NCBI GenBank assembly: GCA_037447605.1
Contig: CM074807.1
Coordinates: 1,860,001-1,924,000, forward strand
Reading direction: 5' to 3'
Length of the DNA: 64,000 nucleotides
Source: Zygnema circumcarinatum SAG 698-1b
Lineage: Eukaryota > Plantae > Zygnematophyceae
Part shown: positions 17,949 through 28,316 of the stretch, one piece after another
Layout of the letters: each line of letters opens with the position of its first letter
Numbering within the stretch: position 1 is the stretch's first letter
Notes under the pieces: model-generated
What the model was told of the DNA's origin: nothing
What the model saw: only the letters and a program-made list of their open reading frames with translations
Databases searched by the model: none
Made by a program: the position numbers and the translations under genes

Positions 17949-20900
17949 CTAGAGTTCGTCGTGGTCTTCCGGCTCCTCTGCCTCTCCTTCCCCACCGGAC
18001 GCCCCTCCGCTCTTTTGATAAACTTTGGTCACAATGGGATTGCACACGCCCTCAACTTCCTTCAGCTTCTCCTCGTAATCTTCCTTCTCCGCGGTCTGGT
18101 TGTCATCCAGCCATTCCAAGGCCTCCTTCACTGCGGTCTGAATGGTTTCCTTGTCCTCGTCTTCAAGCTTGTCTGCCAGCTTCTCCTTGTCTTCGATGGT
18201 GTTTTTCATGTTGTACACATAGGTCTCCAAAGAGTTACGAGCATCTACCCGCTCCTTGACCTTCTTATCCTCATCAGCAAACTCCTCAGCCTCTTTCACC
18301 ATTCTATCAATATCCTCCTGTGTGAGCCTGCCCTTGTCATTCGTGATGGTGATCTTCTCTGCCTTGCCAGTACCTTTGTCCTCTGCCTTCACGTTCAGAA
18401 TGCCATTGGCATCCAATTCGAATGTCACCTCAATTTGGGGTACCCCTCTGAAACAAAAAACCAGAGAATCGTTAGCCAGTGACTCAAACGCATGTATTAC
18501 GGCAAATGCAGAATTCTGTAGAGCTACTAATAGTAATGACCAACTTCCATTGGCGTTCCCAGCTCATGCGAGACAGAAGCTACTTCCAAAGATGAAGAGA
18601 AAGGAAAGCTCCGGACAAAAAAAAAAAAAAAAGCTGCCTACCGTGGAGCTGGAGGGATGCCATTGAGGTCAAATTTGCCCAACTCATGGCAGTCCTTCGT
18701 CATAGACCTTTCACCCTCAAACACCTGAGACCACAAACAACGATGCACTTTGATAAGCAAATTGCCACAATCGAGAGGATTCAAGGTTCAAGGCATACCT
18801 AGCCATCAACACTACGAAGGAAAACTTTTAACGTCGGATCAGGACGCCCCTTATGGCAAAGGCAGGCACAATTCATCTTCCACAAAGAAAATTGATTTAT
18901 CCAGGACTGAATTGCAGAAAATTGGCATGGTCTATCTTCACAAAGAAAAAAGGCTGTATAAAATACCCAAAGCTTTCGGAAAAATGGCATTGTAGACGTA
19001 CCTGAATAGAAACAGTTGTCTGCTGGTCCTGGTAAGTTGTGAAAGTCTGGGATTTCTTCGTGGGAATAACCGTGTTCCTGGGGATAAGCTTTGTCATGAC
19101 TCCACCGACAGTCTCAATTCCAAGAGTCAATGGTGTGACATCAAGGAGGAGGATATCTGCACAGGGCCGAACGAAGACCTCACGTCACTCTTGAGGAGCA
19201 AGAAAGGTATGATATCAAAGTCAACAGATTCTCTAGCATTGCTTTAAGTTGCACTTGTTGAAAAACATACCTTTTGTCTCATCACCACCTTCCCCACTCA
19301 AAATTCCACCCTGAACTGCTGCTCCAAATGCAACAGCTTCATCAGGGTTAACGCCCTTGCTTGGTTCCTTTCCGTCAAAGTAGTCCTTCAACAGCTGTTG
19401 AACCTTGGGAATTCTGCAACAGCCACAATGATACAGTAATTAGGGGATACTTCGAAAGCCGTCTGCAGCTGAAAGATCAGATGACCTTGACCTTCACAAA
19501 CTTCTCAGACACGTTACAAGAGGTCTCGTACCTTGTGCTCCCGCCCACGAGCACAATCTCATGAATATCAGTCTTTTGCAGACCAGCGTCATCCATGGCT
19601 TTCTTCACTGGCCCCATGGTCTTCCTGAAGAGGTCGTTGTTCAGTTCCTCGAAACGCGCCCTGGTCAGTGGCTCCGACAGATCTTGACCATCGAACAAAG
19701 ACTCGATTTCCACACGGACCTGTCCAACAAATAATGAGATGTGTAAATAAAAACGTTTGTAAAACTACTGGTTAATAAGTTTTCAAAAAAGGAGAAGCCG
19801 ACAGAACATCGTGAGACCAACCTGGTGCTGGTTGCTGAGAGCTCTCTTAGCCCGCTCGGCTTCACGCCTGAGCTTTCCAAGTGCCCTGTTGTCTTTGCTC
19901 ACATCCTTGTTGTACTTTTTCTTGATGAGCTTGATGAAGTACTCCATGATGCGTTGGTCAAAATCCTCACCTGCCGGCATAAAAACTCACTCTAGAACAC
20001 TCACTCTCTAACACCACTCTAGAAAACATGCACCGACAATCATTAGCCCGCTCTGCGTCACTTGTAATACAACACAACGCAAAACTGCTAGATCGGACCC
20101 ATTGATGTCTGAAGACCAGGACATACCGGTAGAGATCATACCGCGAAGTTATGTGCCACCTATCGAGTACCACCATTTCTCAATCATCGTAAGAAAATCA
20201 CTGATCATAAGAATCCCGTACCTCCAAGATGAGTGTCGCCATTGGTAGCCAACACCTCGAACACGCCATTGTCAATAGTGAGAATGCTGACATCGAAAGT
20301 GCCACCTCCAAGATCAAACACCAGAATGTTTTTCTCTCCACCCTTCTTATCCAAACCATAGGCGATTGCGGCAGCAGTAGGCTCGTTAATGATGCGGGCT
20401 ACATTGAGACCAGAAATGACACCAGCGTCTTTTGTGGCCTGCCTCTGGGCATCGTTGAAATAAGCTGCAGAAACGAGGTTCGGCAGTTCATCAGAAGAAA
20501 CCTTCCAAAGGAAGATCCAAGAAAGCTCCATAATTGGCACTTTATCAAACTCAAGCTCAATAACATTTGACACAATGGCGAAGGAGTCTCACCTGGTACA
20601 GTGACAACCGCGTCCTTAATCTTCTTTCCTAGGAAAGCCTCGGCTGTCTCCTTCATTTTCGTTAGAATAATAGCAGAGATCTCCTCTGGAGAGAATGTCT
20701 TCTGCTCTCCATCCTTGATCTTCACTTGGATATATGGCTTGCCATCCTTATTTACGATCTTATAAGGCACTAACTTCATATCCCTCTGGACCTCCTTGTC
20801 CTCAAACCTGCCAAACCACGTATTCATCATTTTTAACCTCCCACATTCAGGAACTTTTTCTATCCGGAAAGGAGGCTCCATGAGACGTTTCAAGTTATCT

Positions 20901-21440
20901 ACATAGGACAACCCAAAAGGTTTTGCGCCGCATTCAAGTTAAAAGTATACAATTCTCAGAGGTACGCCTCAATAAAACATTCTCATAGATTCTATAACTT
21001 ACTTTCTTCCAATGAGTCGCTTGACATCGAAGACAGTCCTCTCTGGATTGGAAGAGAACTGATTCTTAGCCGCCTCTCCAATCAGGCGCTCTGAGTCAGT
21101 GAAGGCCACCCAGGAAGGTGTAATACGGTTTCCCTGGTCGTTGGCGATGATTTCCACCTTGCCATTCTTGTATACTCCCACACAAGAGTAAGTCGTCCCT
21201 AGATCGATCCCTATGACCGTGCCCAGTTTTGGCGCATCATCGGCCGCCGACACGAGTCCCATGCACAGACCTGCAAACAGTAGACCATGGATTCCTTCAG
21301 CACCCCCTCTCCAAAGACCAACCATAACTCTCCCTTCACATCTCAAGCCAACCAACCCTCAAGCAGGCATCACACTTCCAGGAAAAGCGGCTGCACTGAC
21401 CGGCAAGCAGCAGAAACAGAAGTCCACTGCGCAGCGCCAT
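17949..21440 (-). CDS. BiP: ER luminal HSP70 (BiP)
   Basis: Signal peptide [13 protein letters not shown]|GLCMGLVSA, then [61 protein letters not shown] and a C-terminal HDEL followed by TAG at 17949-17951. Confidence 0.98.
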
Positions 21441-28000: not shown

Positions 28001-28316
28001 TGGTTTTGTGGGCACTTGTTGTACAAGCAAATATGTATGTAAGCTGACATTCAGAAATGAGAATGTCATTGAGAGGGAGCAGGAAGAAGGTGAAGACGAG
28101 CCATCAAGCGCAGCTGAGCCTGAGTCTGAACAAGAAGGCTTAGCTCCAATTGATCTTGTGGATGATGAAACCGGAGAAGTGATCCCTGCAGACCAGCATG
28201 GAGCCTATATGGAGAAGTTTGCAGCGAAGAAACAGGCCGAAGCTGAAGCAGAGGCGCTTGCTGGGGGAGGCGCTGCCCAGGCTGCTGAGACTGCTGATCT
28301 CAAGGATGAGCTTTAA
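22052..28316 (+). CDS. GRP94: ER HSP90 (endoplasmin/GRP94, SHEPHERD-like)
   Basis: Signal peptide [21 protein letters not shown], then [99 protein letters not shown] and a C-terminal KDEL followed by TAA. Confidence 0.98.

Follow-up and report, generated by a model that had tools for sequence, protein, structure and literature searches.

Two chaperone genes of the endoplasmic reticulum (ER), BiP and GRP94, lie head-to-head in the genome of the zygnematophycean alga Zygnema circumcarinatum SAG 698-1b (GenBank assembly GCA_037447605.1, contig CM074807.1, positions 1,860,001 to 1,924,000 of the forward strand; this stretch of 64,000 nucleotides is called the window in the following, and coordinates count from its first letter). 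The locus raises the question of whether such an arrangement is inherited or accidental, and whether the short DNA between both genes could serve them as a common control region. Positions 17949-28316 hold a true divergent pair of two ER-lumenal chaperone genes, with BiP ending in HDEL and GRP94 ending in KDEL. The best explanation for this locus is a real ancestral pair whose spacer, as we infer, would act as one bidirectional ER-stress promoter, and we assign this reading a probability of roughly 0.6.

BiP is transcribed from the minus strand (17949-21440) and GRP94 divergently from the plus strand (22052-28316). The ATGs at 21440 and 22052, which had been proposed in an earlier inspection of the letters alone (the sequence-only reading), were confirmed by the ends of open reading frames (ORFs), Pfam matches and splice borders. 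The spacer between them (21441-22051) measures 611 bp from ATG to ATG, so that the transcription starts of BiP and GRP94 must be even closer to each other and fall within the distance of 1 kb between start sites that was used to define head-to-head genes. With a G+C content of 66.6%, compared to about 45% in the flanking genes, a CpG observed/expected ratio of 1.03 and no TATA box between 21441 and 22051, this G+C- and CpG-rich spacer is, by its sequence composition, a candidate bidirectional promoter.

The identity of both genes was established by database searches with one exon at a time; the tree and the identity values were computed from joined in-frame exon cores. BiP, the ER-lumenal Hsp70, comprises about ten exons (17949-21440, minus strand), as deduced from ORFs, Pfam HSP70 matches, GT..AG borders and the tree. 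Pfam PF00012 (HSP70) matches three minus-strand exons with E-values from 1e-28 to 6e-48, and both the ATPase and the substrate-binding domain of Hsp70 are present. Compared with named plant BiPs, every exon core shows about 90% identity (best protein match about 91%), and a word search of the protein collection with the last exon returned fragments only, the best of them with 84% identity. The stop codon at 17949-17951 follows ...EPEDHDEL (ORF 17949-18428, minus strand). In a maximum-likelihood tree, the protein is placed in a clade with the BiPs of Closterium and Mesotaenium endlicherianum (support 97/98) within the streptophyte BiPs, and thus groups with BiP orthologues rather than with cytosolic Hsp70.

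At the other end of the gene, exon 1 of BiP is only 40 nt long (21401-21440, minus strand) and, according to the sequence and its counterpart in Sphagnum and Marchantia, carries the first 13 codons of the signal peptide plus one nucleotide. It is followed by a predicted GT..AG intron of 130 nt (21271-21400, minus strand; GTCAGT...TTTGCAG). After splicing, the N-terminus reads as 22 residues followed by ADD, a typical signal peptide, which together with the HDEL end gives BiP both signals of an ER-lumenal protein; the signal peptides of BiP and GRP94 were judged by eye. The ATG at 21440 is supported by the BiP genes of Sphagnum and Marchantia, since both have a matching short exon 1 that ends at a signal-peptide Gly with a GT donor. 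An alternative start at an ATG near 21325, without intron 1, was rejected, as the model with the GT..AG intron gives a cleaner signal peptide, and it is also disfavoured by this short first exon of the two bryophyte genes.

GRP94 (HSP90B), an ER-lumenal Hsp90 of the SHEPHERD type, has at least 16 exons (22052-28316, plus strand), which were assembled from ORFs, Pfam, exon cores and structure matches. The first ATG in its frame is the one at 22052, where exon 1 (22052-22115, plus strand) opens with a 21-residue signal peptide start and ends at the donor G/GTGAGT, and the stop codon at 28314-28316 follows ...ADLKDEL (ORF 27984-28316, plus strand), so that a signal peptide and a C-terminal KDEL are both in place. 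Pfam PF00183 (HSP90) matches the exons with E-values of 1e-13 to 1e-15, and one exon of 46 aa gives HATPase_c and HATPase_c_3 matches that are weak and below the Pfam cut-off; both the N-domain and the middle/C-terminal domain of a GRP94 were thereby found. In addition, 13 collinear high-scoring segment pairs connect the gene with a full-length green GRP94 ORF (tblastn). For the exon at 25326-25520, the five best matches among solved structures are endoplasmin (E 2e-21), compared to about 1e-18 or weaker for cytosolic Hsp90 and about 6e-15 for plastid HSP90-5; these structure matches place the gene closest to the ER paralogue and farther from the Hsp90 proteins of the cytosol, of plastids and of bacteria.

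What, then, does the spacer contain that could serve both genes? In animals as well as in plants, BiP-type genes are induced by ER stress through ER stress response elements (ERSE), unfolded protein response elements (UPRE) and the plant-type ERSE (pERSE), and we used the definitions CCAAT-N9-CCACG for ERSE, CCAAT-N10-CACG for pERSE and TGACGTGG for UPRE (PMC3645738). Starting from the BiP side, a UPRE core CCACGTCA (TGACGTGG on the minus strand) is present at 21660-21667 (plus strand), 220 bp from the BiP ATG, just where the sequence-only reading had put it, and conforms to TGACGTGG/A. A motif scan further revealed two CCAAT boxes on the plus strand (21684-21688 and 21714-21718), a G-box CACGTG at 21734-21739, the two-unit heat shock element (HSE)-like palindrome TTCTAGAA at 21770-21777 and another CCAAT box on the minus strand (21842-21846; ATTGG on the plus strand). 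Towards GRP94, a pERSE at 21873-21891 (plus strand), 161 bp upstream of the GRP94 ATG, runs into a second G-box CACGTG at 21888-21893. The last CCAAT box (22037-22041, minus strand) starts only 11 nt before the GRP94 ATG and for this reason is probably part of its 5′ untranslated region (5′UTR).

The accumulation of these motifs was assessed with 5000 dinucleotide-preserving shuffles of the spacer 21441-22051. CCAAT was observed five times, compared to 0.66 times expected (p 0.0008), and the pERSE once compared to 0.005 times (p 0.005), while TGACGTGG occurred once (0.017 expected, p 0.017) and CACGTG twice (0.21 expected, p 0.02). Moreover, the pERSE at 21873-21891 is the sole copy within the 64-kb window. 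The earlier description of this element as a perfect CCAAT-N10-CACG running into a G-box was correct in position and form, and it stands for the relaxed plant form only: its half site reads GCACG instead of CCACG, which is why it does not qualify as a strict ERSE-I. No strict ERSE-I (CCAAT-N9-CCACG), no ERSE-II and no full 16-nt pUPRE ATTGGTCCACGTCATC were found in 21441-22051. Besides the element within the pERSE, four CCAAT boxes (21684, 21714, 21842 and 22037) were counted instead of the three given before, and the two-unit HSE was recovered as described, with no third unit; an HSE of at least three alternating nGAAn units is absent from the spacer, which contains only this palindrome and TTCACGAA at 21508.

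Elsewhere in the window, three further TGACGTGG/CCACGTCA cores are located at 29823, 62224 and 62550, the first of which lies 1.5 kb past the GRP94 stop. A minus-strand match to CCAAT-N9-CACG at 27101-27119 straddles an exon-intron border of GRP94 (27114/27115), is mostly exonic and probably represents a chance match.

Whether the pair is inherited can be judged from other green plants. In Marchantia polymorpha (two assemblies), a gene for an 844-aa HSP90 is located upstream of BiP on the opposite strand at an ATG-to-ATG distance of 5531 bp, and in Sphagnum fallax, a gene for an 848-aa HSP90 takes the same position at 1517 bp (both spacer lengths derive from annotated ATG-to-stop ranges). GRP94 of the window is collinear with both of these genes, and a tblastn search with its exons yielded ten collinear exons in Marchantia and twelve in Sphagnum. 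In Pycnococcus provasolii (GCA_049487715.1), a prasinophyte chlorophyte, GRP94 is accompanied by a divergent Hsp70 gene at most 1261 bp away, the product of which ends in EDEHDEL and whose exons are 73-95% identical to the BiP exons of the window, with about 60% for the last exon. The annotated start of this Pycnococcus BiP, MADDSDSDSLGTTIGIDLG (L094:8668-8760), is without a signal peptide, and an extra BiP-like match is found upstream of the annotated ATG. Both observations point to a probable annotation error in the N-terminal exon, in which case the real spacer would be shorter than 1261 bp. Finally, the fern Adiantum nelumboides features a divergent gene for an 826-aa protein of the HSP90 family, a candidate GRP94, about 9.5 kb upstream of BiP with no gene called between them, and probably has the head-to-head pair as well.

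The sequence-only reading had also given the two genes as neighbours in Chlamydomonas and as unlinked in Arabidopsis, and both statements hold. The Chlamydomonas genes for the ER Hsp70 (BIP1, Cre02.g080700) and the ER HSP90B (Cre02.g080650) have consecutive gene IDs, from which their adjacency on chromosome 2 was judged (PMC6313938), and Arabidopsis BiP1 (AT5G28540), BiP2 (AT5G42020), BiP3 (AT1G09080) and SHD (AT4G24190) are unlinked according to their codes (PMC8079734). The Chlamydomonas adjacency is already implicit in its annotation, and a description of the BiP-GRP94 pair as conserved was not found in the literature searched. A second Chlamydomonas BiP gene, BIP2, which we take to be Cre02.g080600, would lie on the other side, and the human BiP and GRP94 genes are presumably unlinked.

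Linkage in related genomes, on which the sequence-only reading had made its proposal depend, recurs in Sphagnum, Marchantia and Pycnococcus and is missing in Micromonas as well as at one BiP each of Closterium and Diphasiastrum. Micromonas-like contigs lack a called HSP90 gene in the 10 kb around BiP, a search of them for exons of GRP94 gave none, and GRP94 of Micromonas commoda has neighbours other than BiP. For Closterium, which belongs to the same algal class as Zygnema, tblastn against the 10 kb next to the one BiP examined detected no exon of GRP94; either the pair is broken there or the examined BiP is a second copy. In this genome (Closterium sp. Naga37s-1, L011), the annotation shows the 10 kb upstream of BiP free of genes. 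Likewise, exons of GRP94 are missing up to 10 kb from the one BiP examined in Diphasiastrum. A GRP94-anchored scan of metagenomes covered 80 loci, three of which, all Sphagnum-like, have BiP head-to-head, and about 27 others with at least 4 kb of upstream DNA have no BiP there; some of these contain introns and are seed-plant-like, the others lack introns and are Mamiellales-like. Three anonymous metagenome contigs with BiP (L001-L003) have no Hsp90 neighbour, and tblastx comparison of the window with Marchantia or Sphagnum found no synteny beyond the two genes.

The same divergent orientation is nevertheless seen in five sampled lineages, in four of which the ER-type partner was verified from DNA. 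Any one genome would show such a divergent adjacency by chance with odds of about 1 in 10,000 or lower, and chance cannot account for its occurrence with two named genes in four or five lineages. The chlorophyte-streptophyte split dates back on the order of a billion years. Because the same orientation occurs on both sides of this split, an ancestral arrangement with several later losses is favoured, and the simplest history is probably a microsynteny of ancestral green plants that was later lost in Mamiellales and seed plants. The claim of an ancient green-lineage arrangement is therefore supported and can be extended to a moss, a liverwort, a prasinophyte and probably a fern. More tentative, and in our estimate slightly short of even odds, is the proposal that this rare neighbourhood, handed down from the common ancestor of green plants and independently broken in Mamiellales and seed plants, was selected for shared control of ER proteostasis.

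The orthologous spacers give further hints at such control. Those of Sphagnum and Marchantia each contain a single strict ERSE-I CCAAT-N9-CCACG, which is the only one in a 23-kb locus in both cases (shuffle p 0.0025 and 0.0105, respectively), and a relative of Sphagnum with a 90%-identical spacer has kept both ERSE-I half sites. In Marchantia, the ERSE-I is fused to a CCACGTCA UPRE (together L009:7465-7486) and is found in a G+C-richer island (L009:7000-7900) midway between both genes, with 2.5 to 3 kb to each ATG. A distal enhancer is one possibility for this island, a promoter followed by a long 5′UTR intron another. A part of the same mid-spacer (L009:5800-7000) is A+T-rich, with a G+C content of 24-31%, and includes a (TA)n run.

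BiP and GRP94 act successively on the same clients, and both are textbook co-induced targets of the unfolded protein response (UPR). In the pair described here, shared ER-stress control is a prediction from the motifs, and could be achieved as follows: The G+C-rich, TATA-less spacer would act as a bidirectional promoter, with NF-Y binding to its CCAAT boxes, while the CACG(TG) half of CCAAT-N10-CACG and the CCACGTCA UPRE would be recognised by ER-stress bZIP factors orthologous to bZIP28 and to IRE1-spliced bZIP60. A single activation event could then increase transcription to either side, so that the partner chaperones stay in step, and proximity of the genes would be favoured because it retains both of them under the same control region.

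Several observations, however, weigh against one shared promoter. In the window spacer, only the relaxed pERSE with its GCACG half site is present, and with the UPRE close to BiP and the pERSE close to GRP94 (220 bp and 161 bp, respectively), two abutting promoters fit equally well. With 5.5 kb in Marchantia and about 9.5 kb in Adiantum, the spacers there exceed the length of one compact promoter. Furthermore, the Pycnococcus spacer contains no CCAAT, ERSE or UPRE, and the linkage therefore outlives the motifs. In Diphasiastrum complanatum, a strict ERSE-I (L013:9520-9538) is found about 480 bp upstream of BiP although this gene has no GRP94 neighbour within 10 kb; here, the ERSE-I goes with BiP and not with the pair. 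This Diphasiastrum gene and the co-regulation of the unlinked genes in Arabidopsis together imply that linkage is not needed for co-regulation.

The main rival to a shared promoter is a pair of abutting promoters that use separate elements close to either gene. According to this explanation, the two back-to-back promoters would be independent and share nothing: the nearby CCACGTCA and CCAAT boxes would drive BiP, the nearby CCAAT-N10-CACG/G-box would drive GRP94, and the linkage would persist for other reasons such as a shared domain of open chromatin, low rearrangement near essential genes or inertia. It agrees with the position of each element nearer to one ATG, with the persistence of the pair across the wide spacers of Marchantia and Adiantum, with the Pycnococcus pair that is kept without any ERSE or UPRE and with the ERSE-I of the unlinked Diphasiastrum BiP. 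Yet, the 611 bp between the ATGs leave about 400 bp or less between the likely transcription starts, and ERSE and CCAAT are generally known to work in either orientation in other systems. In Marchantia, moreover, the sole ERSE-I/UPRE island is situated in mid-spacer, roughly equidistant from both genes, and inertia alone seldom preserves a pair across the chlorophyte-streptophyte split. Weighing both sides, we regard two independent promoters as rather unlikely, while taking them seriously.

Another explanation accepts a bidirectional promoter and questions its response to stress. The motifs could represent ordinary promoter grammar, i.e., a module of NF-Y and G-box sites, in a strong constitutive housekeeping promoter, and stress control, if there is any, would reside elsewhere. 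While the CpG-island-like composition of the spacer and its missing TATA box are in line with this option, the composite element occurs exactly once in the 64-kb window, namely in this spacer, and the strict ERSE-I in the spacer of Sphagnum and in that of Marchantia has no second copy at its locus. In both plants and animals, moreover, BiP and GRP94 are the classic targets of ERSE control (PMC3645738). A purely constitutive function therefore appears unlikely to us.

An origin of the adjacency by repeated convergence instead of descent from ancestral green plants, for which its absence from Mamiellales, Arabidopsis and the neighbourhood of the Closterium BiP and one Diphasiastrum BiP as well as the 15-fold variation of spacer lengths could be cited, is very improbable given the same orientation in five sampled lineages from both sides of the chlorophyte-streptophyte split, the odds of about 1 in 10,000 or less per genome and the fact that a rearrangement breaks up such a pair far more easily than the identical arrangement arises several times.

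Apart from the chaperone pair, the window contains long ORFs of 350-432 aa at 15866-17038, 38765-40063, 46116-47249 and 62470-63525, none of which has a Pfam match.

A spacer that serves as one bidirectional ER-stress promoter would imply, if true, that a shared control region was kept from prasinophytes to mosses and probably ferns. It would also offer a compact, natural and stress-responsive bidirectional promoter for the engineering of algae and bryophytes. The presence of the pair in Marchantia, which is transformable, allows a clean test of whether linkage matters for chaperone balance. Moreover, the BiP-GRP94 pair is a rare deep-time synteny marker for green-plant genomes and, if it was inherited and independently broken, its splitting provides a natural experiment on chaperone stoichiometry and UPR wiring.

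In Arabidopsis, as judged from gene codes, and presumably in human, both genes are unlinked and each of them therefore carries its own copy of the element, whereas here a single spacer lies between the two. The proteins and the class of cis-elements are the same for mammalian GRP78/BiP and GRP94 and for Arabidopsis BiP and SHD/HSP90.7 (PMC3645738). Animals and Arabidopsis achieve co-induction via duplicated elements on unlinked genes, and a shared region, if true, would represent another, more ancient way to do so. In Chlamydomonas reinhardtii, BIP1 (Cre02.g080700) and HSP90B (Cre02.g080650), which encode these same ER chaperones, are neighbours judging by their IDs (PMC6313938).

Beyond ER chaperones, the pair resembles other head-to-head partner genes that have been conserved since ancient times. 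In the divergent core-histone pairs H2A-H2B and H3-H4, the amounts of both partners must stay in step. These pairs are, however, multi-copy, under cell-cycle control and far more widespread, whereas BiP-GRP94 is present as a single copy and has disappeared from several green lineages. The closest known case is the Hsp60-Hsp10 pair of animals: in mammals, HSPD1 and HSPE1 lie head-to-head at a shared, stress-responsive bidirectional promoter and have long been conserved as such. In both systems, cooperating chaperones of one compartment are encoded divergently, with a short spacer that contains stress elements of this very compartment. The animal pair serves the mitochondrion, while the pair described here combines an Hsp70 and an Hsp90 of the ER with ERSE and UPRE motifs in the green lineage, and its promoter function is predicted from the DNA.

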